Positions 7,567 to 64,000 of a stretch of 64,000 bases of DNA are shown here, one piece after another; the stretch's first letter is position 1, and each line of letters begins with the position of its first letter. The DNA comes from Prasinococcaceae sp. CCMP 1430 (lineage: Eukaryota; Plantae; Prasinodermophyta): positions 101,378-165,377 of the forward strand of contig RQSC01000001.1 in the NCBI GenBank assembly GCA_013416795.1, given 5' to 3'. The notes beneath the pieces are model-generated. The model searched no databases and was not told the DNA's origin. It saw only the letters and a list, made by a program, of their open reading frames with translations. Both the position numbers and the translations under genes were made by a program.

Positions 7567-7644
7567 NNNNNNNNNNNNNNNNNNNNNNNNNNNNNNNNNN
7601 NNNNNNNNNNNNNNNNNNNNNNNNNNNNNNNNNNNNNNNNNNNN

Positions 7645-8492
7645 CGCGGCGCAGCTGCGCGGGATGGGCTTCCCCGTGGGGGGCGGCGGCGGCGGGGCGG
7701 CAGCCGAGTGGGTCGCCACGGCCGCAGCAGCAGCCAGCAGCGGCGGCGGCAGCTGCGACGACGACGCGCTTGCGGCAGCGGCACTCGACTCAGACTTCGG
7801 GGCGGGAGGTGGAGCGGACGGCGCTGACGGTGCGGTCGGCGGCGGCCACGGCGCCGACGCCGGCAACAACATGCTGCCTGCGGGCGTGTCGGGGATGTTG
7901 CAGGGCGTGTTGAGCGTGCGCGTCGTCATGCAGGTGGATGAGGTGGTCGACATCGGCGCTGCCGCACGCGAGCGCTACGTGGGGTGCGACGGCGGCGCGA
8001 CGGGCGGCGCGCCTACGCCCGCCCGCGCTTCGCGCGTGCTGAAGCTGCGGCTCACCGATGGCGCACAGCGCGTGACGGCGGTAGAGTACAAGTGAGAAGC
8101 CGCAGCGACGCGCACAAGCGCGCGCTCATACAAGCGCGTGCGCACGCACTCGCTTCCACTCGCACCGCGTCTTCGCGAGTACGACTGTGTCGTCGAGAGG
8201 GCGCGGGGGAAGGGGGGGAAAGAGAGAGAGGGAAGCTGTCCGGGTGCGGTCGCGAGAGAGGCCGGTACGGACGCCCGTGGTTCGACCGGTATGATGGCGC
8301 GCACGTGCGGCGCGGCTTGCTGCTGCTCACACCAGACGTTGTGCGCGTGCTTGGCGGCCGGGTGAGTTTCCTCGAGGCCGCGCGTGTCGCGGCAGTAGAA
8401 GCGTGGAATGAGCCTGCGCGCGGGCGTGGGGTGCCGCGCGCCGAGAGGGCGAGGCGAGCTGCCGCCAGAGCGATGGGGGCGCCAGCGGGCGC

Positions 8493-8529
<37 letters not shown>

Positions 8530-9222
8530 CAGGAGCAGCAGCAGGAGCAGGAGCAGCAGTACCACCACCACCAGCGAGCGCATCCGCCGACGGAGCTGAC
8601 TGCACCCACGCAGAGGTACACGCAGGGACCGCAGCAACCCCAGCAATATCAGCAGCCACAGCAGCAAATTCGGCAGCAGCAACAGCAGCCATCAGCGCAC
8701 TTCAACACGCAGCAGCAGACGGCGCCGTACAACGCAACCAACACGAGAGATGTGGGGCGGCAGGGTGACGGTGCGGTGACGGTTGCGATGGTGCCCACGG
8801 GCACGTTCGCCTCCCTGGCGCCACCTGCCGTCACCGCGGTGCGCGTGCGCGCCCGCCTGAAGACATCGCATCGGCTGAGCACGAGCAAGGGCATCTACGA
8901 GCTGCGCGTGCTCGCTGAGGACAGCGCGGGCAACGTCACCGAGGCGCTGATCGCCTCTAGCATCATCGAGGAGCACGTGGGCGTGGCGTGCGCTGAGTTT
9001 GACCGCCTCAAGCGCGAGGCGATGGACGAGGCCAAGCGGCGCATCGCGCCGCTCCAGACTTTCTTGCGCGGATTCAAAGGTGCCATGGACGTGCGCGTGT
9101 CGCAGGACCTGCCCGTGCCGCTCATCACACGCATGGCACCGCTGCCCGAACATGAGGCCCCTCGAGGTGACGGCGGAGACGGCGGCCACTCCGACGCAGC
9201 GCACAAGCGCAGGCGCACATGA
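7645..9222 (+). CDS. RMI1: RecQ-mediated genome instability protein 1 (OB1 + polyQ linker + C-terminal OB); 5' in gap; intron 8092-8240 (acceptor visible only after in-place complementation)
   Basis: QVDEVVDIG, LKLRLTDGAQRVTAVEYK and RRGLLLLTPDVVRVLGGRV match the RMI1 N-terminal OB fold; the C-terminal region resembles RMI1_C. Confidence 0.85.
8165..8292. other. Segment complemented in place (not reversed) across the RMI1 intron/exon junction; left edge approximate
   Basis: The base-by-base complement gives GCTGAC (8182-8187), a pyrimidine tract and CAG (8238-8240). It then reads in frame (K)PTPALSPAMPAGTKLAI and joins DGAHVRRG. Confidence 0.9.
8494..8559 (+). repeat. (CAG)n / CAGGAG polyglutamine tract in RMI1 linker
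   Basis: Eleven uninterrupted CAG followed by mixed GAG/CAG units. Confidence 0.95.
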
Positions 9223-9314
9223 GAAGGACGCACATGAGGGCGACAGGCGGAGGACGCGGACAGAGAGTCTGACAATTTTTAATCAATAATGTACAGGAAG
9301 GACTGGTGTCCAGA

Positions 9315-12300
9315 TCACACGATCTCGTAGAGCTTCTTGAGCTTGACGACCAGCCGCCACGACTCCTTGTCCATCTCATCGACGAAATGCTCTTTGAGCA
9401 AGTCGATGCTCTTGCGCGTGATGAGCGACACAAGGTCGTCCGTGTGGTCGAAGTGGCGGCCGTACATGCGCGAGCTCTCGGTGGGGTTGGTGGGCTCGAT
9501 CTTCATGGCGACGCTCTGGCCGCGCGTTGCCCGGTCCACCGCTTTGTGCTCGCGCTCGATGGAGGCGATGCGCCCCAGCGTGATCTGGCCCTGCGACGGC
9601 ACGCAGATGGGCGTGCCGATGCGCGCTATGCCGTCGATGACGTCCACTCCCACCACGATGGGGTCCTTGCGCGTAAAGACACACGAAGGCAGGATGCGCA
9701 GCACGCAGGGGAAGGCCGCGTCACGCAGCGTCTCCTTCTTCTTCTGCGCCTTCACCTCCTTCATGTAGGCCGAAAACTGGTCGAACAGGTGGTAGATGAT
9801 GTCCGCGGTCATGATGCGCACGCCCATCTCCTTTGCCAGCTCGCGCGCGTCCTTCTTCACCTCGATGTCGAACGCCAGGATCACAGCGAACTCCGGCAAG
9901 CCGCGCGTGGCCATCATGCTCGCGCGCATGACGTCCTTCTTCGAGATTGGGCCGATGTTGACGCCGCACACGGGAATCTGCACGTCGTCCGAGCCCAGGA
10001 ACTCCAGAAGTGCCTCCAGCGAGCCAAGCGTCGACGCCTGCACGCACACGCCGTCGGCGGTCTTGTCCACGCCCTCGAGCACGGAGCTCATCTCGTTCTC
10101 GACCGTGTCGCGCAGCTCCTCCTCCGAGTCCTGGGAGCCCAGCACGTACAGCTGCGTGCCCGCGAGCGCGCTCTCCAGGTTGTTGGCCGCGAGCTTGACG
10201 CCGATGGCGCCTTCGATCTGCTTGTGGTGTTGGTAGCTGCCCTTCACGCGCATCTCCTTCATTGGGTGCGGCGTGAGGACGGCGCGCACCTGTGTGACGA
10301 TGGCGCCCTGCAAGCCACACACGAGGTGCCACAGCGGGAGGAACTACGCCGGCAACTGCTCCTACTGCAGTGTCCACCACGGTTCGGGGAGCTACCAGAA
10401 CTGAAGGTCGTGGCATGTGACGTCGCGCCCCCTCATGGTGTCGAAGAGACCAAGCATCTTGTACGTGAGATGCGACAGCATGTAGAGCAGGTCGGGAATG
10501 CCCTCGCCGGTAATAGCCGAGGTAGGCACCACGTTGACATAGCGACGCGAGTCGGGGTTCTCCCAGTACAGCGCAGCGTTGAGGCCCTGCTCGGCCAGCG
10601 CGAGGAAGGCCGCGTCCTTGCGCTTCTCGAACTCGAGCTGTGCGTGCTCCTTCTGGCCCTTGAGGGATTTGCGGAAGGAGCCGTTTGGCACCGCCTCCCA
10701 GTCGAAAATGCGGTCGCACTTGTTGAGCGCGACTACGAAAGGTGTCTTGCGCATCTTGAGCAGGTTGATCGACTCGATGGTCTGCTGCTCGAGGCCATGC
10801 ATGATGTCCACCACCAGCACGGCGATGTCACACAGGCCGCTGCCGCGCGAGCGCAGGTTAGAGAAGCTTTCGTGGCCGGGCGTGTCGATGACCAGCAGGC
10901 CAGGAATCTTGAGCGGTTCGCCCTCGAGGCAATCGGCGGCCTTCTCCTCGAGCGCCTCATGCGGCATGAAGGTAGCGCCGATCTGCTGGGTGATTCCGCC
11001 CGCCTCACCGTCCTGCACGTTGGTGTTGCGGATCTTGTCGAGAATTTTGGTCTTGCCGGTATCGACGTGGCCCAGGATGCAGCAAATGGGCGAGCGCAGG
11101 CGGTCGGCGCTCTTCAGCTTGCGCTGCTTGGCCTCCCGCGCCTCGCGGGCGGCGCGCGCCTCCGCTATCCGCTCCTCGCGTTCCTCCTCACTGTCTGTGC
11201 TGTAGTCGTCGCTGTCGGTGTCGCTGTAGTCATCGTCGCTGTCGCTGTCCGAGTCACTGTCCGAGTCGTCGCTGCCGGAGTCCGAGTCGGAGCCCGAGCC
11301 TGACTCTGAGCCCGATTCGGAGTCGGAGTCTCCCGACGCATCCTCGTCGGAGCCCTCATCTGAGGCCGCCTTGGCCTCCTCCTTGGCCTTCTCAGGCTCC
11401 TCGGGCGCCACGGTTTTGACCTCAGCGGTCTCCCAGTCCTCATCCTCCCAGTCGTCAGCTGCCTCCTCGGCCGCCTTGGCAGCCTCTGCCTCTGCCTCTG
11501 CTTTGGCCTTGGCCTCCGCCTCCGCCTTCGCCTCGGCCTCCTCGGCCTGCTTCTTCTCCTCGGCAGCCTTCTGCGCAGCGGCAATCTCCTCGGGCGACTT
11601 CTTCTTCTTCTTGCCGTACACGACCTTCTTGGGCTTGTCGGCGGCGGCCTCGACCTTGGCGCCCGCCTGTGCGAGCAGCGCCTCGCGCTGAGCGGCGAGT
11701 CGGCGCGCCTCCTCCTTCTGTTTGGCAGTCACAGCCACGCCCGCCTTGCGCTTGGCCTCGAGCTTCTCCTTCTCGCGCTGTTTCTTCGCCAAGCGCTTCT
11801 CCTCCGCCCGGCGCGCCTCCTCAGCTAGGCGCGCCTCCTCGGCCTCGGCGGCGAGGCGAGCCTCTTCCTCGGCGCGCTTGGCGGCCTCCTCGGCCGCCTG
11901 CTGCTTGGCAATGCGCTCGCGCATCTCGAGCACTGCCTTGCTCACCTTCTTCTCGGGCTTCTTGCCACTTGCAGCCGCACCCTCGTCGCCACCCTCAGCC
12001 GCCTTGGCCTTGGCCTCCTTCTCCTTCTGCTTCTTCTTGAGGCGCTTCTTCTGCGCGGCAGTGAGCTCCTTGGGCTCCTCGCTCTCCGCCGGCGCCTCGT
12101 CGCCGGCGCCGGCGTCCGCTTTGGCCGCCTCAGCAGTGCCCCCGGCGGCCTTGTCCTCCGCCTTGGCTTTGTCGTCGAGCTTCACACCATCGAGGTCAGC
12201 GAGCAGCGCATCAATGTCATCATCGTCGGCCTTCTTCGCCTCCTTCTTCTGCTTCTGCTTGAGCTTCTTCTTCTGCGCCTTGGAAAGCTTCGCGGACGGC

Positions 12301-13919
12301 TCGGGCTCCTTGGGGGCATCCAGGCTCGCCAGCAGGGCGTCGAGCTCCGCGTCCTCCTCCTCTTTCTTCGAAGACTTCTTCTTGCTTGACTTGGGCTCGG
12401 GCGTCGGCTCAGGCTCCGGGATCGGCTCGGGCCCAGGCGCCGTTGCCTTCTTGCCCTTCTTGCCTTTCTTTGCAAACACGCTCGACACCGCGGGCGTGTC
12501 CTCCTCGCTGCTGCTGCTGCTTTCAGCCGCCTGGGGAGGAGGGGCGGCCTTCTTTTTGCCTTTCTTGGCGAACACGCTCGCAGGGGCTGGCTCGTCGTCC
12601 TCGCTGCTGCTGCTGTCCGCTTTAGGCGCCGGCGCGCTCTTCTTCTTCTTCTTCTTGGCGAACACACTCGACGCCGCGGGCTTGTCGTCGTCACTGCTGC
12701 TGCTGCTGGTCTCGGCCACGGGCGCCTTCTTGCTCTTCTTCTTGCCGAAGACGGACGGCACCGCCGGCGCCGGCTCGGCCGCGTCCCCGCCCTTCTTCGA
12801 CTTTTTCTTCTTGAGCGCGCTCGCGGGCACGGTGGTGGGAGGTGCGCTGCCCACTTTCGCGTCCTCTGGCAGAATGGTTACGCCCGAGTAGTCGGCGTCC
12901 CAGCCCATCTCCGCGGCGCCGCAGAACATGCCGAAGCTGGCGACCCCCCGCAGATCGACCTTCTCGACGCGCAGGCCGGTGCCCGGCACAGTAGAGCCGA
13001 TGGGCGCGTATATAGTCTTCACGCCCTTCTTGGCATTGCCGGCGCTGGTGACCACCTGAAACCACGTGTCGGGCCCCACGACGGCTTTGCACACGCGCAG
13101 CTTGTCGGCGCCGGGGTGACGCTTGGCGGATGCGATCTCGCACACGACGAGCTTTGGAACGTACACTTCGTCCTCCTCGTCCTCCTCCGACTCCTCCGAC
13201 TCCTCCGACTCGTCGTCGGCGTCGTCGCCCATGAGCGCCGCGAAACCCGACTTGACTGGTGCGGGCTCCTCCTCCGACTCATCTTCCTCGTCGTCGTCGC
13301 CATCGTCGCCCATGAGGGCCGCAAATCCGCTCTTCGCGGGCGGGGCGGCGTCCTCCTCTTCCTCCTCCTCGTCGTCATCGTCGTCGTCATCGCCCATGAG
13401 CGCGGCGAAGCCCGACTTGGCCGCAGGGGGCTCGTCCTCCTCCTCCTCCTCTTCCTCGTCGTCTTCATCGCCATCGCCGCCGAGTGCGCCAAAGCCCGCC
13501 GGGAAGCCGCCCGCCTTAGGCGGAGGCGCCTCCTCCTCCTCCGACTCGGCGTCTTCCATGGCCTCGTCACTGCCATCCCCACCCATCAGTGCCGCGAAGC
13601 CGCCCGCCTGGGCCTTGGCGGGCTCGTCGTCGCTGCTGAAGCCCGCCGCGGCCTTGCCCTTCTTGCCCTTCTTCTTGGCGCGCTTGTCCTTCTTGGCTTG
13701 CGACTTGGACATGACGGGAGCGTCATCCTCCTCGCCGTCGCTGCCTTTGGAGGCGGGCGGCATCGGCACGTCGTCATCGCTGTCGTCGCCACCGCGCCCC
13801 TTCTTCCCCTTCTTGCCCGCCTTCTTCGCCGCGCGCTTCTCCTTGCGCGCCTGCGCCTTGGACTTCTCGGGCGCGCCGTCGCCGTCGCCGTCGCCGCCGC
13901 CGCCGGCGGGCGCGTCCGC
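9315..13919 (-). CDS. eIF5B: Eukaryotic translation initiation factor 5B; start in gap; 42 codons (10326-10451) readable only after in-place complementation
   Basis: G domain [46 protein letters not shown]; domains II-IV ([36 protein letters not shown]); long Lys/Glu/Asp-rich N-terminus. Confidence 0.97.
10326..10451. other. 126-nt segment complemented in place inside eIF5B domain II
   Basis: Reading the + strand backwards without complementing gives [42 protein letters not shown], in frame with both flanks. Confidence 0.97.
12838..13166 (-). other. tRNA-binding OB domain (bacterial PheT B2 / YtpR type) embedded in the eIF5B N-terminal region
   Basis: [23 protein letters not shown]...QVVTSAGN...[32 protein letters not shown] parallels the consensus HPNADKLxVC...GxKIKKxKLRGVxSxGMLCSxxELG. 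Confidence 0.9.
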
Positions 13920-14660
13920 NNNNNNNNNNNNNNNNNNNNNNNNNNNNNNNNNNNNNNNNNNNNNNNNNNNNNNNNNNNNNNNNNNNNNNNNNNNNNNNNN
14001 NNNNNNNNNNNNNNNNNNNNNNNACCGGCCGGCCGCCGCGCGAAACGCGATTTCGCGCCGCGCCGCCCTTTTCGGTCCGGCCTCGGCGCCACCGCCCTTT
14101 TTCCGCCGACCGCGCGTTTCGTCCGCCGTTCCGCCGAACGAAACAACCAATAATCAATCGCCCAGCCCAGGGTGGGTGGGTGGGTGCTCACCGACCGAGA
14201 GAAAGACAGAAGGGAGGGTGGGGGTGAGAGCCACCCACAGCCGGCCGCCGCACGCGATCCCAGCCAATTTCTCCGTTCCTTCCTTCCGCTTTCCCGCAGC
14301 CGATCGAGGCTCTTCGCCGTGCCCTCGGTCGACCGGCCGTGGCTGGCTGGCTGGCTGGGAGGAGATCTCGTCGTGCTTTCTTGCTTGACAGACAGACACA
14401 TCTTCCTCTGACTCTGCAGAGGCTGTGGCGCGGCGAGATCGCCGCCGCCGCCAGGGCAAGGAGTGGCCGGAGCTCCCCTGCTGCAGCAGCAGGAGCGGAT
14501 GGCAGCGGGCGAAGGGCCGTCATCAGGCCAGCAGGGGCCTCAGCACCCCCATCCAGCGGGATCGCGTATCAAACAAGGAGCAGCGTGCATGGAGTACTAC
14601 GACGGGACTACACTTCAGTGGCGTGGTGCACTGGCATGTCATTGGCTAGGGCTTGGATGG

Positions 14661-18749: not shown

Positions 18750-20016
18750 CAGCCCACAGCTCATGCGGCGTCGGGCCACCAACCTCCTGTACCAGTAAAT
18801 CCTCACTCATTCCTCGCGCGCGTCAGTCGCGTACGGCGCGCCGCCGACCTCCTTCCCCCCCCGACACACACGGCACCCTTGGGGGCACATCCGCGCGCCC
18901 CCGCCGCGCCGTCGGCTTCCGCACAGCCCCGCCCCCTTTGGCTTGCCTCCTCCCACCCCTCATCTCGCGCGCGGCCGGCCGCCCGAGGGCCCTCCGTCCG
19001 AGGGCCTCCATGCACCGCTCGGGGTGCCTTTCGATGGGTCGGCCGCGCCTCTGCACGACAGCCTGTGTCTGTCGATGCGACGCCTCCGATACGTCGGGTT
19101 TGCCACCCCGAGCGCCTTTCGCGGCGATTGATGGTGGGTAGCACACCGCGCGCGAGGAGCGCGCCGCCCCCCTCGCAGGCTCGCGCCCGTCTCTGCTGCT
19201 GCACGGCTGCTCCCGCCGCCGTCGATCGAGCGTCGAGCGTCGAGCGACGATGGCCTTCGCACTCGGTGGGTGCAACGGCCCGACGCCGTGCTTGCTCGGG
19301 GCCGCACGGCGTCGCTGTTGTCGTCGTCGCTTCCTCCGTCACCTCGCCCACGCACCTGCACCGCCCTCGCCAAAAACATAGATGGGCTCGACGCGAACGA
19401 AACCGATGCTGGCAATCCAATCCAATCCATCCCGAGCGGATCTCATCACCAGCTACCGGCTGGTTCGCTCCGGCGGCTTCAGTCAGTCGGCGGCTTGGCC
19501 TGCCTGGGACGGCGCGATTAATCGGGTGTCGCGGGGGGGGGTCAATTGGCAATTGGCGCGGATGGCATTGGCCCGCGAGGTGTTTGTGTGTCGTTGTCGT
19601 GTCAGACATTCAGCTTTTTTTTTTTTTTTTTCGGCGCGCCCTTCCGATCGCGCGCCTTTCCTGATCCGGATCCGGATCCCGCCGCGCGCCGCGCGCGCGC
19701 GGCGGCGGCGCGCGCGTTCCGGAGCGCGGAAACGATCCGAGTTCCGGCGTTGATTGGCTTGGTTGGTAGGCTGCTATCTATTGGTTGGTGGGGAGGGGTG
19801 TGGGGCGGCGCGAGCGCACATGCCGGCGATGAGTGCGGAAGTCGGCGGATGTGCGGCGCGGCGGCGCTCCCGAGGGCGCTCCACAACCGATCCCTAAGCC
19901 AAAAAACCCACCTCGAATAATGGTTTCAAAACTTTGATTAAGTTGTGTTATATTCATATTAGNGTGGGCGGGCGGCCGCGGCGTGGCCCGCGGCGGCAGA
20001 GGCAGCGGCGGGCGCG

Positions 20017-36517: not shown

Positions 36518-38673
36518 TCAAGGCGACTTCACGACCTGTGCGTCGAGCACGCCATCCGCATCGCAGTACTTGGGAGCCTGCGGGTGGTGCGTGTCGAGCC
36601 ACATCTGCATCTGCTGGATCTGGTGACTCTGCGTGACGATGATCTCACGCAACAAGTTCTCCACGTTCAAGGCCTCGCTGTCCCATCCGGCGGCGACCTG
36701 ACCGAACTGCGGGGCCGGGGCGCGCGCGAATGCAGCAGTCACACGGCGAAGCGAGTGGATGGGGGCGTCGCACACCGCTCGCGTGCATTAGCATCACCGC
36801 GCAGAGGCATCGGGCGCGCGGGCGACGCGGAAAGAAACGCTAATAGGCACCATGCGGGGCGATGTGACCAGGGAGCTTGAGGGAGGGCGAAGGGCGTCGC
36901 GCTGCGCACCTTGAGCGCGATCTTGCTCATCTCGATGGCGTTCAGGTGGTGTGGTATCATCTGGTGCATGAAGAGGGTCAGGGTGTTGTCGGTCTCCTCG
37001 ACGCGCATCTCGTAGTTCATCTTGCAGCCTATGGCCTGCATGCAGTTGCTGAAGATGTCGTCTTGGGGGTCGCACAGGAACTTCTGGTCGGGACAAAACT
37101 CGTCGGCGCGGTAGTGGAAGTCCGAGATGTTGCCGGTTCCGCACGCCTGGTCGAAGTCGCTCTGGGGCGGCCCGTAGTACTCCGCGGGGTCCCAGGGCTC
37201 CGTCAGCTCGTTGGCGAACGGGGGCGGATCGGCGACGTTGATGGCGCCGGTCATGCCCGAGTGGACGTGGCAGTAGTAGAAAAGCTGTTTCGTGAGCGAG
37301 CCCAGCGGAATGGTCAGCTTGGTCGAATACTGGTTCTTCTCCCACTCCTCGAAGGGTTGCTTGAACGAAGGTACGTAGTTGTCCAGCCGGCTGATGATGT
37401 CGTTGGCCACGGTTTCGAGGGTCTGGCACACGCCGTTGACGCAGTGCAGCGGCACCTGCACGATGCCCACCCCCGGGTCGCACATCCATTCCGAGGCCGT
37501 GCAATCGGCGGCCGCCTTGGGAGCGCAGGGGTCGCTCGCGTTGGTGCCGGCAGCGCTGGAATGCTGCTCGCCGCCGGCGCCATGAGCGCCGCCGGTTGCG
37601 TCCCCGCCGTGCATGCTGTGGTCCTGCTGCAGGCGGCGCCTGTGCCCGAACGTGGCGAAGTCATCGTTGTGGTCGTGGGTGTGGTCCTGTGCGTCGGCGG
37701 ACGCCTCCTGCTGCTGCTGCGGGCCGCCAAGCGCCGCGCACGCGGCCGGGTCCTTCACGGACGAGCCGTGGGTGTGGTGCGCGTGGCCGGACGCCCCAGG
37801 CACCGTGAGCTCGGGGGCGCCGATGTACGCAGCGTCGGGATAATAACCGAAGGCCAGCGGATGCATCCAGTTGTTGGGCGCGCTCTGCACGAACTCGTAC
37901 TCGACGCCGCGCACCATCACGAGCGCGGGGCTCACGCCCTCGCAGCCGATCACGCGATAGGCGCCCGACATGGACGTCGTTCGCGCGAAGTCCACGTCGA
38001 ACCAGAATCGGTTGTTGCTGTCGGCGTTGCACGGCAGGCCCGTGTTGGACGGCGGCTCTTCCGCATCCGCGCTCGCGGCCTGCTCCGCCGTGCTCGCCGC
38101 GGAGGAGTGGCCCGCTCCGGAGGCGCCGTGCTGCTGCTCGTGCACCATCGGAGCGGGCTTTGGCGCCTGCGCGGAGTGCGTCATGTCGCCGTGGTCCATC
38201 GTCGCGCCGTGGTCCATCGTCCCCGGCTCCGTCATGTCGCCGTGGTCCATCATCGCGCCGTGGTCCATCGTTCCATTCCCCTCCTCCTTCGTCTCCGGCT
38301 CGTTCATGTCGCCGTGGTCCATCATCGCGCCGTGGTCCATCGTCCCATTCTCCTCCTCCTTCGTCTCCGGCTCGTTCATGCTGCCGTGGTCCATCATCGC
38401 GCCGTGGTCCATCGTCCCATTCTCCTCCTCCTTCGTCTCCGGCTCGTTCATGCTGCCGTGGTCCATCATCGCGCCGTGGTCCATCGTCCCATTCTCCTCC
38501 TCCTTCATCTCCGGTTCTTTCATCTCACCTTGGTCCATCATCGCGCCGTGGTCCATCCCCCCGTGGTCCATCTCCGTTCCTGGAGCCATCGACTCGGCGG
38601 AGGTGCGCACGGCCGCGCCGAGCACCAGCAGTACAGCGGCGCAGCTCGCCGCGCGGCGCATGCCCGCGGCCAT
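36518..38673 (-). CDS. Secreted Met/His-rich protein with a cupredoxin-like copper motif and C-terminal DUF305 domain; intron 36707-36909
   Basis: Signal peptide; MDHG repeats; NNWMHPL and FYYCHVHSGMTGAINV; DUF305 FMHQMIPHHLNAIEMS and IIVTQSHQIQQM. Confidence 0.85.
38170..38575 (-). repeat. 72-bp coding tandem repeat (EENGTMDHGAMMDHGSMNEPETKE) with internal 18-bp MDHG subrepeats
   Basis: Unit recurs at 38281, 38353 and 38425, with truncated copies at both ends. Confidence 0.95.
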
Positions 38674-38694
38674 TGCCGTCGCCCCGCCCCTCCC

Positions 38695-38820
38695 CTCCCT
38701 CGCCGCCAGTGGTCCGCCGCCGGCGCTCGCCCCTCGGGCGCTCACGAACGGGCCGCGCCCGCTGACTTTTTCGCCCTTTTTTTTCGACGGACGGCGCAGA
38801 TACCGATCGCCGCGTCGCTC
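38695..38820. other. Probable third in-place complemented segment covering the RPN3 start codon; left edge not determinable
   Basis: In-frame TACCGATCGCCGCGTCGC at 38801-38818 complements to ATG GCT AGC GGC GCA GCG (MASGAA), which runs into SLRAAAALV. No other ATG lies in the intergenic space. Confidence 0.6.
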
Positions 38821-40423
38821 GCTGCGCGCCGCCGCCGCGCTCGTGCGGCGCTCGATCGCCGCCAAGGAGGCGTTCCTCGTGCAGCGCGCGCTGCGCGCGA
38901 CCGCCGCGGCGAGGCGCAAGGGGCTGCTCAAGGAGGACGAGGTGGGGGCGTTCGCGGGGAAGGCCATCGGCGACGGATCGCCGCTGAAGGCCTCGCTCGA
39001 CGCCGCGCTGCCGCAGGTGAGCGCCGCGGCGCTCCCCGCGTGCCCCCGTTGGCGCGCACGCGCTTGCGCGCGCGAATAGATCCTGCCGCGAAAGATCTCC
39101 GCTCGCGCGCGCCAGCGCAGCCGGCCGCGCGACCGCCCGTGCCCTTCGCCGTGGCCGTGCCCTAGCCCATGCCTGCGCCCGTACCCACCCCTGCCAGCAT
39201 GCAGCGCTCGTGAGATCTGACGGAGCGCGCGCCACCAGGGGGATGCGTCCATGGGCGAGGATGGCGGTGAGGCCGCCGAGGCCGCCGAGCCCGCCGAGGC
39301 GCTGCCCGAGGTCGACGCGTACGTCGCGCTGTGCGGCGTGACCGCGCTGATCGACGCGGGCAAGGTCGAGCAGGCGCGCTCGCTGGTGACGGACGTGGTG
39401 CAGTGGCTGCAATCATCGGTGAATCGGCGCACGATGGACGTGCTCGCTTCCCGCCTGTACTTCTACTACAGCCTCGCGCACGAGAAGCTGGGCCGCCTCG
39501 CTGAGATCCGGCCGACGCTGCTCGCGTTGCATCGCTCCGCCGCGGTGCGGCACGACGAGTCGGGCCAGGAGATGCTGGTCAACCTGCTGCTGCGCAACTA
39601 CCTGCACTACTCGCTCTACGACCAAGCGGAGAAGCTGCGCGCGCAGGTGGAGCAGGGGAGCGGCGGCCAGGGCAGCAACCAGCAGCTCTGTCGCTACATG
39701 TTCTACATGGGGCGCGTGCGCGCGGTCGCGCTCGAGTACTCCGAGGCGAAGGAGTGCCTACAGCAGGCGCTGCGCAAGGCGCCGCAGGCAGGCGCGCTCG
39801 GCTTCCGCGCGGCATGCAATAAGTGGCTGGTGGTGGTGCAGCTGCTGCTGGGCGAGGTGCCCGAGCGCTCCGTCTTCCGCCAGGAGGGGCTGCAGGCGGC
39901 GCTCGAGCCCTACTACCGCCTGGCGTTCGCCGTGCGCCAGGGCGACGTGCAGGAGTTCGAGGCCGCCGCGGCGGCCAACGTGCGCGTCTTCCAGCGCGAT
40001 CGCGTGCACAACCTCATCGTGCGACTGCACCGCACCGTGCTGCGCACGGGCCTGCGCAACCTCAGCCTGGCGTACTCGCGCATCTCCATTGCGGACGCCG
40101 CGGCCAAGCTTGGCCTCTCCGACGCCGACGCGGAAGACGCCGAGTTCATTGTCGCAAAGGTGATCCGCGACGGCGGCATCGACGCGCGCATCGATCGCGC
40201 GACGGGCACGATTATCAGCAGCGAAACGGCGGGCGTGTACGACACCGCCGAGCCCCAGGCGGCTTTCCACAGCCGCATCGCCTTCTGCCTCAACCTCCAC
40301 AACGACGCAGTCAAGGCGATGCGCTATCCGCCCGACGCCTACAAGGCAAAGCTCAAGGAGCTCGAGAGCCGCAATATGCTCGACATGAGCGAGCTCGAGG
40401 ACGAGCTCGACGACGATTTCTGA
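38801..40423 (+). CDS. RPN3: 26S proteasome non-ATPase regulatory subunit 3 (PCI domain); intron 39017-39238
   Basis: NRRTMDVLASRLYFYYS, NLLLRNYLHYSLYDQAEKL, SNQQLCRYMFYMGR, LAYSRISIAD, EPQAAFHSRIAFCLNLHNDAVKAMRYP. Confidence 0.97.
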
Positions 40424-40983
40424 GTGGCGGTTCGGCGCGTGATGCCAGCCCGGCGGTGTGGTGTGGCCGCCGCGCGGCGCCGACGCTGCCCAGCAGGTAA
40501 TTGTCACGTTCGAAACAGACGCCCGTGCGCCGTCGGAGGGGCGGCCGACGCACTTGTGGCCGAGCAGCCATGGAGCGCGCCCACAGCAGCGCAGCACGCG
40601 CTCCCTCTCTCTCTCTCTCACACTGCGCGCTCGCACCCGCTGCAGAAATTTGGTGCGGATTTCAGACGTGTCCGGCGCGCCACATGCGCCGCGCGCGCCG
40701 CGCGCGCCGGGGACTACCCGCGCGGCGGCGCTGCGCCGACCGCCCTGCTCACGCACGCTCGTGTGCGAAGTCCCCCTTCCCCCCCCCCCGCTCTGTCCCT
40801 CCCTCCATTCGCGCGCGCCCTTGCCGCGCGCTCTAGCGTTCGCGCGGGACGCGCAACCGGCGCTGCGCGGGGTGGCACAGGCGCCTGGTGGCGCTGCGTG
40901 GGCGACTTCCCTCTTCCCCCGTGCCCCTACACGCACGCCCCAACCTGCACACCTTGTGACGCGCTTGTAGTGCCGGCGGGAGG

Positions 40984-44059: not shown

Positions 44060-45820
44060 CGTCGCCGATCTATACACACCCCGGGACACCCTCGGCCTCC
44101 GCCTGCGCCAGGCGGGAGCGGAGGAAGGGGGGGTGTCGGGGGGGGGGGGCCACACCCGCTGCGCCTCTGGCGCGCGCTGTGGCGGCCGCCGCTCCAAAGC
44201 TCCGGAACCCCAATCGCACATCCCCCGCATAACACCCCAAAACGGAATCCACATCATCCATATAAATACATTAATAGAACTGCTTTGGATTCCATATGGG
44301 TTTTGGGTTCCATCCGTGGGTGCGCGCGCCGCAGCGCGGCCTCGCGCGCGGAGCGCGCGCGCGCGCGCGCTCCGCGGGTTCGCTCCGCGCTCATTTTCGG
44401 CCTGAAAACGGGCGAAAAATGCGCCGTTTAAAAAAGATGGTCATCATAGTGCATGGATATTGTCCCCCGTCCCGCGCCTCGCCCCCCGCCAAAAAGCCGC
44501 ACCAAAACCGGCAAAAAAAAACGAAAGGGCGGAGACGCCGAACGAATCCGAATCGATCCGTTTTTTTTCGATCCGGTGGCTCCCACCCTGCCGCCGCCAG
44601 CCGCCGCCCGGCCGCTGCGCTGCCCCCGTCGATGCCTTTTGACGCGCCGCGCCAAAGGCGCGCGACCTCGGTCCGTTTTGACATAATCAAGAAAACCTGA
44701 TTTTATACCGTAAACATCAAAATCCTGTGTCTGTACCGTGATGGTACGCGTGCACGTCGTGCAACCGCACTTTTGTATGTATGTGTGTGTGTATATCATT
44801 CCTGGACTCTAACCCAAACCTCGCAGCCTCGATGACCTATGGACGCGAAAAAAAAATCCATTTTTCTTTTGAAAAGGAAAAAAGATCTTTTCTTTTGACG
44901 TTATCTTTTTCTTTTTCTTTTTCTTTTGACGTGTTTTGTGAGGCTTTTTTCCGCTCCGACGAGCGTCCGCACGACAGGCACGCCACTCCCTGGTGCATTG
45001 TACTACGAAGTTGAGTAAAACCTGATATTTTACCCTAAATACCAATGTTTGTGTTTGGCGTCCCAAAACTCGCTCGGGAGTTCCTGGCGACCCACCGCCC
45101 GGAATACCCGGATTTCCGCGCACAGCGTGCGCGGGAACACGGCCCGGATGGCGCCGCAAGCCTCCCACAGATCCGCGCGGCGAGACCGAGCCGCTTCCGC
45201 AGCGACGTACGGGGGTGCCGGGTCCCAGCCCCGGTTGGGACCTCCCGGATGTGTTGGGGCTGACTGCGTTGTACGCTGATATTCTCATTCCAATTCCGGA
45301 CTGCTACCGGTCTAACCCAACCCAAAGCTCTGCCACCTCGATGCGAACCCCAAAGCGCAGCGAAATAAAATATCGCACTCGTCTTTTCCCCCCCCCCCTT
45401 CGTTTCGCGGAGCGGCGCGCGCGTTCGCGCGCGTCCCGCGGGATCGGCCGGGGCGGCGCGGCGCGCGGCGCCGACCACGTCGAGTGACGTCCTCCAATCG
45501 CCACGATGCGCGTCACGTCATGAGCGTTTTCGAATGCTATCTGACCTCTATCTCATTCATGTCACTTTCAAATTCAAGATGACTTATTGGAGATGTTTGA
45601 TATACAAGTTTAACCCTATATGTGTTTGGGTTGTAACCTCAAAGGGGTAGATTTCGGGACCGCGGTTTGGCGGGGTCTGCTGCGGTGCGCCACAGCGCGC
45701 GCGCGGCGGCGCACCTCGCGGCGGGCCGCCCCCTCGGCGCTCCCCCTTCCCGACCGCTTCCCCGCTCCGTCCCTTGCCGCGGGGGCGTGCCGTGCGAGGC
45801 GAGGGCGCGCGCTGGGACAT

Positions 45821-46194
45821 AATTTAAATTAATTCATTGAATTATAAACAACTTGCTCATTTTCTTGTTGAACAACATTATCAATTAAACCATATTGACG
45901 AGCATCAGCTGCTGATAAATAACGGTCACGGTCCATATCACGAGCTACAACTGCTAGTGATTGCCCTGTACGTTTTGCATATAGACGACCTACTTGTTGA
46001 CGTAAACGTAATACTTCTAAGGCTTCTAACTTTACATTACTTGCTTGCCCTTGTGAACCACCTAATGGCTGGTGAATCATAATACGTGCATGTTGTAGGG
46101 CAATACGTTGACCTAATGTTCCACCAACTAATACAAAGGAAGCCATTGAAGAAGCACAACCAACACAAATGGTTGTAACATTTGCTTGAATATG
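45821..46194 (-). pseudogene. clpP: 3' half of a chloroplast-type clpP gene inserted in nuclear DNA (NUPT or chimeric join)
   Basis: About 37% GC by hand count against very GC-rich flanks. Reads [22 protein letters not shown]...ARIMIHQP...RDMDRDRYLSA...YGLID with stop at 45829-45831; plastid-like codons (CGT, TTA, CAA). Confidence 0.93.
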
Positions 46195-47582
46195 TTCCGG
46201 CGGCCGCGCCCGCGCGGCTCGCGCGGCTCGCCGCGCCGTTCTCCGCGGCGCCCGTCGCCGACTTCTCCGGGCTGCTCTCGACGATCGCCGCCAAGGTGCC
46301 GGAGGAGCGCGAGAAGCTGCGGGCGCTCAAGGCCGAGCTCGGCGACAAGGTCCTGGGCGAGGTGACGCTCAACATGGCCATCGGTGGCATGCGCGGCGTC
46401 AAGGGCATGATCTGGGAGACGTCGCTGCTGGACGAGGCGGAGGGCATCCGCTTCCGCGGCCACACCATTGAGGACCTGCAGAAGTCGCTGCCGACCGCCA
46501 TCGAGGGCGGAGAGCCCATGCCGGAGGGCCTGCTGTGGCTCCTGCTCACCGGCGACATCCCGACCGCCGAGCAGGCCGACAGCCTGCGGGCGGAGCTCGC
46601 GGCGCGCGCGCTGCGCCAGGAGGGCCTGGTGCGCGACATGCTGGAGAAGTACCCCATCAAGACGATGCACCCCATGACGCAGCTCTCCACGCGCGTGCTG
46701 GCGCTCCAGCCGCGCAGCGCCTTCGCGGCGGCGTACGCGAGCGGCAGCGTGCACAAGACCGAGCTGTGGCGGCAGATCTACGAGGACGCGCTCGACCTGA
46801 TCGCCGTGCTGCCCATGGTCGCGGGCCACATCTACCGCGAGTCGTCGGGCAAGAGCGACATCGGCTGGGTGCGCCACGACGTCGGCCTCGACTGGTCGGC
46901 CAACTACGCGCGCATGATGGGCTACGAGTCGCCCGAGTTCGACGAGCTCCTGCGCCTGTACCTCACCATCCACGCCGACCACGAGGGCGGCTGCGTGAGC
47001 GCGCACACCACGCGGCTGGTGGGATCGGCGCTCTCCGACCCCTACCTGTCGTACGCCGCGGGCATGAACGGCCTCGCGGGACCGCTGCACGGCCTCGCCA
47101 ACCAGGAGGTGCTGCTGTGGCTGCGCTCCGTGCAGGCGGAGCTGGGCGCCAACCCCACCAAGGAGCAGCTCACCGACTTCGTGTGGGCGACGCTGAAGTC
47201 AGGCAAGGTCGTGCCGGGCTACGGCCACGCGGTCCTCCGCAAGACCGACCCGCGCTACACGTGCCAGCGCGAGTTCGCGCTGAAGCACCTGCCGGACGAC
47301 GAGGGCTTCAAGCTGGTGTCGGCGCTGTACGAGGTGGTGCCCAAGGTGCTCGCGGAGACCGGCAAGGTGAAGAACCCCTGGCCCAACGTGGACGCGCACT
47401 CGGGCGTGCTGCTGCAGCACTACGGCATGACCGAGGCCGACTACTACACGGTGCTCTTCGGCGTGTCGCGCGCGCAGGGCGTGCTGGCGCAGCTCGTGTG
47501 GGACCGCGCGCTCGGCCTGCCCATCGAGCGGCTCAAGTCGCTCACCATGGACGCCGCCAGGGCGCAGCTCGGCGGTCAGTAG
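46192..47582 (+). CDS. CS: Mitochondrial-type citrate synthase; candidate ATG 46192 is one base out of frame with the body
   Basis: [73 protein letters not shown]. Confidence 0.95.
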
Positions 47583-59120: not shown

Positions 59121-60199
59121 ATGGGCCGCATGCACAGCAAGGGGTGCGTGCGCGCGCGCGCGCGCGCGGCGCGCGCGCGGAGCGGGCGGGNNNNNNNNNN
59201 NNNNNNNNNNNNNNNNNNNNNNNNNNNNNNNNNNNNNNNNNNNNNNNNNNNNNNNNNNNNNNNNNNNNNNNNNNNNNNNNNNNNNNNNNNNNNNNNNNNN
59301 NNNNNNNNNNNNNNNNNNNNNNNNNNNNNNNNNNNNNNNNNNNNNNNNNNNNNNNNNNNNNNNNNNNNNNNNNNNNNNNNNNNNNNNNNNNNNNNNNNNN
59401 NNNGCGGATCGCGGGGGCCTCGTGCGTGCTCGAGCATGCGGTGCGGCGGCGCGGCGACCGCGCGCGTCGTCGCCCCCGCGGCTTGCTCCGCGCGCAGAAT
59501 GCATTGTCGCCCCTGCGGCGCGCCGAGCTGGGCGCCGGGCACTGCAGCTGTCGCGCACCGCGGGGCCGCGGCGTCTGTCCCTGCGGGCGCGTGGCGATCG
59601 GGCGCCGCGCGCGCCGCCGCCATCGATGCCCCCCCCCTCCTTGCCGCTGCCAGCACGCTCTCTCCCCAGCGTCTCGCTTCCGTTGCTGACGGTCCGCTCC
59701 GCCGCGCCTCGTGGGCACCCGCTCCTACGCATCCCCTGCGCGCGCGCTCGCCCCGGTCCCGAGCAGGAAGGGCATCAGCAAGTCGGCGCGCCCGTACAAG
59801 CGCACGCCGCCGGGCTGGCTCAAGGTGACCGCCCAGGAGGTGACCGACCACATGTGCAAGCTGGCGAAGAAGGGCATGACCCCCTCGCAGATCGGCGTGG
59901 TGCTCCGTGACTCGCACGGCATCGCGCAGGTGCGCTCGGTGACCGGCAACAAGATCCTGCGCATCCTCAAGGGCAACGGCCTCGCCCCGGACCTCCCGGA
60001 GGACCTGTACCACCTCATCAAGAAGGCCGTGTCGATCCGCAAGCACCTGGAGCGCAACCGCAAGGACACCGATGCCAAGTTCCACCTCATTCTCGTGGAG
60101 TCGCGCATCCACCGCCTCGCGCGCTACTACAAGCAGACGCGCAAGGTCCCGCCGACCTTCAAGTACGAGTCCGCGACCGCCAGTACCCTGGTGGCCTAA
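59121..60199 (+). CDS. RPS13: 40S ribosomal protein S13 (uS15); exons 59121-59143 and 59767-60199
   Basis: MGRMHSKG|[10 protein letters not shown]...[13 protein letters not shown]...[17 protein letters not shown]. Confidence 0.98.
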
Positions 60200-60342
60200 G
60201 CGTCGACCACCGCTGCTGCGCTGCCGGTGAGCTTTAATACCTTTCTCACCCCACACCCGCCCACGCGTCCGCCCAGCGCCCTACCGCATGTGCTCCGCAC
60301 ACGTCGCAGGAACCAGAAAGCGGCCGGTCGAGGCGGGTACTG

Positions 60343-62202
60343 TTACGTCTGCGCGGCGGCGCGCGGCGCCCACAGGCGCGAGAGCTGTCCTCTCAAAAGC
60401 GCGTTCATGCCGCGCGGCGGTTGCGGCTGCGCCTCGGAGTCCTGCTCCCCGCTGTTGTCCCTCGCGCCCCCTGCTCCGGTCGGGGGCGTCGCCTCCGTGG
60501 CCGGCGCGCCTTCTGCGGCCCTCCGCGCTCCCTCGCCCGCCTCCTGTCGGTCGCCGTCTGCGTCGACCGCGTGCGCCTCCGGCGCAACATCCTTCGCCCG
60601 CCCCGCCGCGGGCGCGGGCGACGGCCGCCACTGCTGCTGCTGCTGCAGCGCCTGCAGCGCCTGCTCGGACCTGGTCGGCTTGAGCATCTTCATGAAGCCG
60701 CGCAGCTGCTGCCCCCCCTGGCCGAGCCACAGCCTCGGGCCCTTCACCTCCGCCCCCACGAGGCTCTCGATCTGTACCCTGTAGGCCGCCTTCATATCCA
60801 CCATCTGGTCGGCGAGATCGTCGGCTCGCTCGGTGGCCTCGCCGAGCAGTTCGAGCGCGGTGTCGTGGCGCGCCCGCAGCACCTCGAGGTCGCGACGCGC
60901 GGCGGCCGCGGCAGCCTCAGCGTCGCGCGCCTCCTCCTGCGCCTTGAGCGCCGCCTCCATGGCCGCGTCCGCTGCGCGGCCGGCGGACGCCGCTGTCGCC
61001 TCGAGCACCTGCTGCTGCTGCTGGTCGGCCTGCGCCGCGGGCGCGATCGGCTGTGCGGGCTCCTGCTGCCGCGCCGGCCTCGCGGCGAGCTGCTCGCGCA
61101 GGTCCTGGCAGCGCGCGTCGGCCGCCGCAGCGGCGTCGGTGGCAGCGTCGCGCTCCTCCTTGAGCCGCGCCGCCTTCGTGAGCAGCTCCGCGGCAGCGGT
61201 TTTCGCCTCGTTGGCCTCGCGGCGCGCCGCCGTGCGCTCGGATCGAGCGGCCGCGAGCGCCGCTGCGGCGCGCTCGGCCACGGAGCACGCGTCCTCGAGG
61301 CGGAAGCGCACCGACTCGAGGTCGCGCTCGGCAGCGCCGCGCGCGGCGAGCGCAGTCGACAGCTTCTCGCGTAGCGCGCGCTGGCGCTCGGCGCCCTCGG
61401 ACGCCTCGCGCGCGGCGCGGCTGCGCGCCTGGGCGAGCTGCATGCGCAGCGCCTCCGCCTCCATCAGTCCCGGCGCGGCGTCGGTCTGGTGCTCCGCCTG
61501 CGTCTGTCGCAGCGCGCCCTCCGCCGCGCGCGCGCGCTCCTCCGCCGCGCGCACCTCACCGCGTAGCGCCTCATCCGCCGCGCCCCTTCGGGTGTCGGCC
61601 GCTGCCGCCTCGGCCTCGAGCGCCGCGAGCTGGCGCGACAGCGCGTGCTCGCGCGCCTCGGTCTCGCGAAGCGCCGCGGAAAACTTGGAGGCGCGCTCCC
61701 GGTCTGCCTCGGCGGCGGCATCGGCGCGCTCGGCGCGCGCGCGGTGCGACTCGCACTCCTCCTTGAGCGCCGCGAATGCCGCCTGGGCGCCCGTGCCGCT
61801 CGCGCCCCCGCTGCCGCCTCCGCCCCCGCCGCCGCCCTCCGCTCGCGCGATCTTCACATCGAGCTCGAGCTCGGCCACTCGCGTCTTGAGCGCGTCGCAT
61901 GCGTCGCGGGCAGCTCGCGCGTCCGCGTTGGCGGCCTCGAGCGCGTCCCCGAGGTCGTCTGCGGCGTCCCTTGCCTCGTCACGCGCGGCACGCGCCGTGT
62001 TTGTCGCCGCCTCGGCCTCCTGCAGCCGCTCGCGGAACTCGTCGCGCAGCGCGGCCAGCTGCTCGCGCGCGGAGCCCTCCCCGTCGCCGTCGGCCCCGCC
62101 GCCGCGCGCGCGCGCGCGCAGCGCCGCGTTCTCCTCGAGCGCGGTCGCGTGCGCCGCCTGCAGCGCGAGAAGTTTTCGCTCGAGCTCGTCGTCGGCCGCC
62201 AT
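60343..62202 (-). CDS. Long coiled-coil golgin with TMF/ARA160-type C-terminal domain
   Basis: Extended heptads ending in RHDTALELLGEATERADDLADQMVDMKAAYRVQIESL (TMF_TATA_bd-like). Confidence 0.8.
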   Translation of the reverse strand: MAADDELERKLLALQAAHATALEENAALRARARGGGADGDGEGSAREQLAALRDEFRERLQEAEAATNTARAARDEARDAADDLGDALEAANADARAARDACDALKTRVAELELDVKIARAEGGGGGGGGSGGASGTGAQAAFAALKEECESHRARAERADAAAEADRERASKFSAALRETEAREHALSRQLAALEAEAAAADTRRGAADEALRGEVRAAEERARAAEGALRQTQAEHQTDAAPGLMEAEALRMQLAQARSRAAREASEGAERQRALREKLSTALAARGAAERDLESVRFRLEDACSVAERAAAALAAARSERTAARREANEAKTAAAELLTKAARLKEERDAATDAAAAADARCQDLREQLAARPARQQEPAQPIAPAAQADQQQQQVLEATAASAGRAADAAMEAALKAQEEARDAEAAAAAARRDLEVLRARHDTALELLGEATERADDLADQMVDMKAAYRVQIESLVGAEVKGPRLWLGQGGQQLRGFMKMLKPTRSEQALQALQQQQQWRPSPAPAAGRAKDVAPEAHAVDADGDRQEAGEGARRAAEGAPATEATPPTGAGGARDNSGEQDSEAQPQPPRGMNALLRGQLSRLWAPRAAAQT

Positions 62203-62840
62203 CGCCTCCCCTCGCGACCAGCGGCTCCCACACACACACCGCCACCTGCAGCCCGCACGTTTTTTTCCCCTCGCTCGCTCCCGCTCTGCAACGGCCCGGC
62301 GCGCCCGCGCACCGAGGGTCCGTAGAGGGGAGTGGGCCTGGCGAGGGAAGGCGACGCGGAGGCTGCGCTACGCGATGGCGCACCGGAGGACGGGCGAACA
62401 CCCCCCTGCCGCCTCGTCCGCTCCCAGCCCGGCCCCGCAGCGCCGCGCGGCGGCGGGCCGCGCGCGCGCTCTGGCGCCCGGCGCATGCTCGCTGCGCGTC
62501 GCACTCAAACGTGTGAAAAATGCAATGCCGCGAATACAATGTGACGACCATTCAGGAAGGCGCCAGTGCACGGTGGCATGAGCTTGCGTGGCGTGGCGCT
62601 GGCGGCGGCGGACACGGTGGCAGTCGCCGTAGCGGCAGCGATGGGGGTGGCGGTGGCGACCGCGGCGGCGCAGGTGGCGGCGGTGGCGGCGTCCCGGCGT
62701 GCGGGGCGTGCGACGGCACGGCCAGCAAGCGGTTTATGCGAGCTTCGCACAGCGTGGCGCAGCGCCGCCCCGAATGCGCCTGCCATATACCCTCTCCTTT
62801 ACACGGCGCGCGCAGTGTACACCTCAACGCGAAGGCTATT

Positions 62841-63809
62841 TCAGGCGTCGACAAGGGCCTCGGATGCTTCCCAGACAGCTGCGGCAAGCGCGTCGTCGCG
62901 CGAGAGATCGCTGGGGTCCGCGGGCGCGCAGTCGACGAAGTAGCCGCCGCTCTCGCCCTCGACCTCGTCGGAGGAGGCGAGATATATGTGCGTCAGCGCC
63001 CCCTCCTCAACGGTCTTCGCCCGAGCCATCGTGAACCAGAGCAAAGCGCGCTTGAATGGACGCTCGTACCACGCCACCCCGTCCGTGATGTATCGACCGA
63101 GGTCCGTCGCAACGAGCCCGGGACAGAGGGCGTTGGCCGTCACGTGCGCGCCCTCGGCCTCGAGCCGACGCGCGAGCTCGCGCGTGAACAGTACGTTGGC
63201 CGCTTTCGAGTTGGCGTACGCGCCGAACGGGGTGTACTCCTCCATGGGCTCGCCCAGCTTCGCAGGGTCCAGTTCCTTGCACGATGCGTGGATCGCCGAG
63301 GAGACCACCACCACGCGCGCTGGCGACTCGGGCGTGCCCGCCGCGCGCAGCGCCGGCAGCAGCTCGCGCACCAGCAGGTGGTGTCCGAGATGATTGACCC
63401 CCATCTGGGCGTCGAAGCCATCCTTCGTGAGCCGCCCTTGAGGCGTCGCCATGATGCCCGCGTTGTTTACCAGCACGTCCACAGGTGCCGCGCCCACGCG
63501 CTGCGCAAACGCCCGAACGGATGCGAGGTCGCTGAGGTCGAGCTCCTCGACATCGACCGAGACGTTTGTCGCCGCCCCGGCAGCCGCTACGGCGGCCCGC
63601 GCCTCGGCACCCTTGGCGGCGTCTCGGCAGCCCAACACGACGTCGTAGCCGCGCTCCGCCAGCACGACGGCCGTGCGCAGACCCAGACCGCCGCTGCCGC
63701 CCGTGATCACCGCGCGCTTCTTCTGCCCCTCGCCCCCGCTCGCGCTTGCTGCGCCCGCCGCACGCCCGCGCGGCGCCGCTCGTTGCGACCGGCGCGCAAG
63801 CGATCGCAC
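62841..63809 (-). CDS. Classical short-chain dehydrogenase/reductase (retinol dehydrogenase/TIC32-like); true start not resolved
   Basis: ITGGSGGLG, DLSDLASVRAF, LVNNAGIM, VNHLGH, YANSK, CPGLVAT. Confidence 0.93.
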   Translation of the reverse strand: MRSLARRSQRAAPRGRAAGAASASGGEGQKKRAVITGGSGGLGLRTAVVLAERGYDVVLGCRDAAKGAEARAAVAAAGAATNVSVDVEELDLSDLASVRAFAQRVGAAPVDVLVNNAGIMATPQGRLTKDGFDAQMGVNHLGHHLLVRELLPALRAAGTPESPARVVVVSSAIHASCKELDPAKLGEPMEEYTPFGAYANSKAANVLFTRELARRLEAEGAHVTANALCPGLVATDLGRYITDGVAWYERPFKRALLWFTMARAKTVEEGALTHIYLASSDEVEGESGGYFVDCAPADPSDLSRDDALAAAVWEASEALVDA

Positions 63810-64000
63810 GATCGCTCGCGCCCGCAGGCGCAGGCGCGCGCGATGCCGTCGCTGCCGGTGTTCGCGTACGGCGGCGCCTCGGTGGACGCCGCGCCGACGG
63901 TGAAGGAGGCGGGCGGGCGTGAGCGACAGCAGCAGCGCCCGCCGCAGCGTCGAGTCGGAGGCGGCGATTCAGGCAGTGGCAGTGGCGGGGACGCAGGCGG

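Follow-up and report, generated by a model that had tools for sequence, protein, structure and literature searches.

The window analysed here, a 64,000-nt stretch of DNA from Prasinococcaceae sp. CCMP 1430, has a GC content of 68.8% and contains ten N-runs. The published genome of Prasinoderma coloniale is similar in composition, at 69.8% GC, but is free of gaps, having been assembled from PacBio data and polished with Arrow and NextPolish (PMC7455551). Its minus strand carries the gene for eIF5B, a general translation initiation factor, and an RMI1 gene lies beside it on the plus strand. Each of the two genes is interrupted by one block in which the deposited bases are the complement, in place and without reversal, of the sequence that the gene should hold (Table 1).

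Table 1. Features of the eIF5B and RMI1 genes in the window
Feature	Positions	Length	Strand	Evidence
Complemented-in-place block, RMI1	8166..8291	126 nt	+	Complement match to scaffolds L094-L096; splice signals; human RMI1 alignment
eIF5B gene	9315..14012		-	Pfam domains; called genes and translations on independent scaffolds; single ORF after complementing the block
Complemented-in-place block, eIF5B	10325..10449	125 nt	-	Scaffold match; homologue alignment; PDB match

The eIF5B gene as deposited and as decoded

In the deposited record the eIF5B gene is in two pieces. A minus-strand ORF of 1252 codons (10392..14150) makes up the upstream piece, and the same frame continues in a second ORF at 9315..10322. 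Three in-frame stops occur in the deposited gene, at 10392-94, 10362-64 and 10344-46. The N-run at 13920-14023 contains or borders the true start codon (MAPRKKGKKGRNEDDF...), and the upper coordinate of the gene in Table 1 is for that reason approximate.

The encoded protein begins with a Lys/Glu-rich region, followed by a tRNA_bind domain, a G domain and domains II-IV. Pfam searches of the two deposited pieces returned PF01588, PF00009, PF11987 and PF14578. The upstream piece carries the translational GTPase G domain (PF00009, E 8e-33) at residues 1021-1227, and the downstream piece provides domains III and IV through matches to IF-2 (PF11987, E 4e-22) and GTP_EFTU_D4 (PF14578, E 3e-15). The domain II barrel, present in all homologues, is missing between the pieces. 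The tRNA_bind match (PF01588) falls within the N-terminal region, at residues 334-435, which corresponds to about 12850-13150 on the minus strand.

The missing segment can be read directly from the deposited letters. Reading the plus strand from 10451 to 10326 without complementing it yields a 42-residue peptide, and the only PDB chains that this peptide matches are those of eIF5B and aIF5B, at domain II (E 7e-9). Aligned with 14 homologues by MAFFT, the peptide closes the gap without indels and is identical to them at 22-28 of 42 residues, as against 4-8 of 41 for the deposited reading. The flanks of the block are 44-70% identical to the homologues in the same alignment, placing the peptide at the level of its surroundings. 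The earlier note had taken the segment for the conserved start of domain II, and both the PDB match and the gap-free alignment support that assignment.

The same reading is favored at the nucleotide level. Five metagenomic relatives agree with the complemented stretch at 81-86 of 126 positions, a level equal to that of the flanks, and with the deposited stretch at 16-20 of 126. When the entire window, in complement-only form, was searched by tblastn with four eIF5B homologues, the single match was at the block (E about 1e-10). The decoded segment had also been described as host-like in codon usage, which holds true: under a codon log-odds model trained on the window's own genes the uncomplemented reading scores +21.6 bits and the other 11 readings are all negative, and the third codon position is G or C in 37 of the 42 codons. 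Complementing the block merges the two pieces into a single ORF, in which domain II follows the G domain without a gap, as it also does in the intact genes of the environmental scaffolds discussed below.

A true inversion of the segment, giving its reverse complement, or a misread mirror repeat has no place among the explanations. The forward reading of the plus strand is negative by codon log-odds in all frames, eIF5B homologues match only the complement-only window and do so in the gene's own direction, and the independent scaffolds likewise match the complement in the same direction, not the reverse complement.

The interrupted stretch might also be viewed as an intron, or as a segment that is removed or recoded at the RNA level. 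The earlier note had argued that no GT-AG pair fits. Formally this is incorrect, since all three stops can be taken out by in-frame GT...AG pairs, of which 10421..10344 (78 nt) is one. The donors of such pairs are poor (GTCACA, compared with GTGAGA in the neighboring RMI1 intron), and a polypyrimidine tract is absent. Splicing would also delete the CTVLEVK...GTT...NG segment, which is conserved in every homologue; on this point, the loss of an essential segment, the original argument against an intron was sound. Relatives have no intron at this position, and the ORF runs continuously through it on all six of the environmental scaffolds. The chance that processing or recoding of the transcript explains the stretch is, in our judgment, negligible.

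Intact versions of both genes in ocean metagenomes

An exact-protein look-up with the 144-residue ORF at the 3' end of RMI1 (8788-9219, plus strand) identified eight contigs. Six of these (L094-L099) are Tara Oceans metagenome scaffolds of 5.3-7 kb, each from a different sample. They represent environmental populations that have diverged from the window by 0.4-1.5%, and are not the sequenced isolate's own reads. Three of the scaffolds (L097-L099) begin at 8494, and L099 stops at 13825. More broadly, loci L084-L105 include contigs 98.4-99.6% identical to the window, drawn from more than 12 assemblies of ocean metagenomes and SRA data. The alga's natural populations are widespread and supply an independent reference against which the record can be checked.

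The six scaffolds are colinear with the window across 7645-13919, at 98.5-99.6% identity, with the exception of the two blocks. At the eIF5B block, five of them (L094-L098) equal the base-wise complement of the window at 125 of 125 positions and L099 does so at 124 of 125, in the same direction and with zero offset. On either side of the block the scaffolds match the normal window, again with no offset. Thus the central claim of the earlier note, that this stretch is the in-place complement of true coding sequence, is borne out base for base. The exact boundaries lie within the margin of 2 nt that had been allowed for them. The accompanying statement that exactly 42 codons (126 nt) are affected was off by one: the block is 125 nt long. 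Its length is therefore not divisible by three, and both its ends fall within codons. The residues at its true boundaries are ...KML-G-EKL... and ...DTV-V-VCG....

On the scaffolds the gene is intact. The eIF5B ORF is continuous on all six, and on three (L094, L096 and L097) it is called as a single gene of 1560-1565 residues. Across the block, the translated scaffold sequence is identical to that of the window with the block complemented. Scaffold L098, the closest, has 0 mismatches within the block and 25 differences, mostly transitions, in the surrounding 5.4 kb; natural populations of one organism would be expected to differ by such scattered transitions.

The second block lies 2.2 kb away. 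There, three scaffolds (L094-L096) agree with the complement-only window at 126 of 126 positions, in the same orientation and without any shift. The eIF5B block sits in the middle of an exon on the minus strand, whereas the RMI1 block straddles an intron-exon junction on the plus strand, taking in the 3' end of an intron together with 17 codons at the start of the exon behind it. Once it is complemented, a polypyrimidine tract and a CAG acceptor replace the purine-rich letters of the record, and PTPALSPAMPAGTKLAIDG is obtained. The 17 codons of the complemented block (PTPALSPAMPAGTKLAI...) then link exon to exon, and the joined peptide aligns to the OB-fold of human RMI1 through the patched part (E 4e-11). 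Between 7645 and 13919, no complement-type exception other than these two separates the window from the scaffolds.

Independent sequence data from six scaffolds and six samples therefore lack the feature, as expected of an artefact at the level of the record. By the earlier note's own criterion, the stretch would be an artefact if reads agreed with the corrected sequence. In substance this is what was found, as six scaffolds carry the corrected sequence; the part that does not carry over is the source, since these data come from populations other than the isolate.

Further searches and other discrepancies in the record

Homology-free scans of the window, by windowed codon log-odds, by fixed length and by a three-state Viterbi model, singled out only the eIF5B block. 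The other candidates raised by these scans were rejected as antisense or low-complexity false positives. No parallel-complement or mirror repeat of at least 18 nt was found within the window. Comparison with independent contigs showed that 59404-63779 and 38822-40790 are also free of complement blocks. Exact-protein look-ups of six other ORFs of the window found no record. A scan of JGI metagenomes yielded only relatives of at most 75% identity, and one contig (P0121) of a relative at 89% identity ends short of the eIF5B block.

Three patches of about 127 nt had suggested a fixed block size of 127 nt, a k-mer size, which was abandoned once the exact lengths proved to be 125 and 126 nt. One further candidate, 38695-38821 at the start codon of RPN3, was rejected as a complement patch. 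Complementing it does yield an in-frame ATG. Colinearity between the window and ten independent contigs begins only at about 38822; upstream of that point the contigs agree with one another and carry the true RPN3 N-terminus, MEVDAPEKK... (MEVDAPEKKAEAAEE...; about 26 codons), together with a promoter. This N-terminus, which a related full-length RPN3 supports, occurs nowhere in the window in any orientation. The position is thus a breakpoint in colinearity, at which the window lacks the true 5' end of RPN3. There is no N-run there, and the breakpoint is either a misjoin or a strain rearrangement.

Other joins show similar behavior. The Tara scaffolds stop being colinear with the window precisely at the N-runs at 7567-7644 and 13920-14023, and the scaffold sequence beyond these N-runs was not found in the window. 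Toward the end of the window, two contigs (L102 and L103) agree with each other and cease to match at about 63779, where there is no N-run. The discrepancy over about 63779-64000 is possibly another misjoin, or a structural difference.

Several stretches of unusual composition were also observed. Two low-GC islands (44661-45071 and 45791-46201), with 20-22% GC against a background of 69%, have sharp edges and lie just upstream of a citrate synthase ORF; neither decodes under any base transform. A stretch of 27% GC at 19881-19963 adjoins a single N at 19963 and has the look of junk left where a scaffold gap was closed or almost closed. Finally, the minus-strand gene at 36739-38690 has a product that looks secreted. 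Its N-terminus is signal-like, and repeats rich in His and Met are numerous (TMDHGAMMDHG...). Toward the C-terminus it shows what looks like a DUF305-type motif (MIPHH..AIEM). The product may be a metal-binding protein.

Origin of the complemented blocks

Six independent ocean-metagenome assemblies carry a normal, intact eIF5B, and because of this the block at 10325-10449 almost certainly reflects a mistake in the sequence record, with no counterpart in the organism's DNA. The most plausible course of events is that pieces of roughly read length (125-126 nt) entered the consensus after complementation without reversal. The reverse-complement operation would have been only half applied when the piece was pasted, pointing to a fault of strand handling in software. 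Assembly, gap filling, polishing and later file handling are all candidate stages for such a fault. Phrase searches of the literature found no description of complement-only errors of this kind in an assembler, gap closer or polisher.

Two properties of the blocks fit this origin. First, both are blind to codon frame, to exon and to gene strand, and they occur in two unrelated genes on opposite strands. Second, the sequence beneath both shows no decay, without a single difference from the closest scaffold, a state in which a disabled gene would not be kept.

This bears directly on the possibility that the block is genuine in the isolate and that its eIF5B copy is a recent pseudogene of the sequenced strain. 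Such a reading draws what support it has from the scaffolds with the intact gene, which derive from wild relatives and not from the isolate's reads. It would require the same event twice within 2.2 kb, over 125 and 126 nt, with no other change, and it would inactivate a general initiation factor for which tblastn detected no second copy within the window. Beneath the block the gene also looks functional: there are 0 differences from the closest scaffold, and the codon score and GC3 resemble those of intact genes. The event itself has no recognized mechanism. When DNA is inverted by breakage and rejoining the product is the reverse complement, and a segment whose base order is unchanged while every base is swapped for its partner cannot be produced this way. 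We know of no mutational process that yields an unreversed complement, which would need 5'-5' and 3'-3' joins or synthesis de novo. A strain-specific pseudogene is accordingly very unlikely.

A more radical version of the same idea is that the isolate's DNA truly holds segments of unreversed complement, produced by some process such as a form of parallel-strand copying, and that cells tolerate or decode them. Its sole opening is the source of the intact versions, which were seen in wild populations that differ from the window by 0.4-1.5% and not in reads of the isolate; we find the idea hardly credible.

If the record is in error, the fault might also lie in the sequencing chemistry. A SOLiD colour-space decoding error, caused by a wrong anchor base or by two type-3 colour errors, deserves attention here, as a sequence and its complement share one colour string under two-base encoding, making in-place complementation a natural failure mode. 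To our knowledge, colour space is the one sequencing chemistry in which such complementation comes naturally. The many N-runs of the window, including the single N at 19963, would fit a short-read scaffold. Literature searches for a green alga sequenced by SOLiD gave no useful result. However, colour-space errors should produce A<>C/G<>T and A<>G/C<>T blocks as well, visible as islands of about 31% GC in a genome of 69% GC. Of the window's 22 low-GC islands, none gives coding sequence when either companion transform is applied, and in the one window examined the only in-place transform seen is of the complement type. The 12.6 kb compared with independent contigs likewise contains solely complement-type blocks. 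The nearly equal lengths of 125 and 126 nt suit pasted reads better than random pairs of errors. A colour-space origin is improbable, though less so than any of the readings that make the block genuine.

With the block attributed to an error of the record, little of biological importance is left at the locus, and the value of the finding is as a warning about data quality in this assembly. The complemented blocks place false stops and ruined splice signals in conserved genes (eIF5B and RMI1), and any gene models, protein sets, pseudogene counts or inferences of gene loss based on the record will be wrong at such sites. Each patch could pass for an exotic discovery when the raw sequence is read. 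The record also carries joins at odds with independent assemblies. All such blocks genome-wide would come to light if the record, and a complement-only copy of it, were compared with conserved proteins or independent contigs.

The blocks can be set beside three close parallels. Like strand-handling errors in sequence processing, they are in place, preserve length, ignore codons, exons and strand, are of read size and recur in unrelated genes, and the underlying sequence is likewise perfectly kept. A chromosomal inversion also changes strand sense between fixed flanks, but the alga's block differs in keeping its base order. In SOLiD colour-space errors complementation in place follows from the symmetry of the encoding, and the companion transforms that the mechanism also predicts were not found in the window.

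The gene itself compares closely with its known relatives. We have little doubt that the alga's eIF5B is ordinary, intact and intron-less, with the stops and the loss of the start of domain II confined to the deposited record. The closest named homologues, those of green algae, are about 54-70% identical to it in the 100-residue flanks of the block. The N-terminal tRNA_bind domain (PF01588) is likewise listed for many chlorophyte eIF5Bs in precomputed Pfam lists, making it a trait of the lineage and not of this record. Finally, the G domain and domains II, III and IV are common to eukaryotic eIF5B and to the alga's gene, which, correctly read, has nothing unusual about it.
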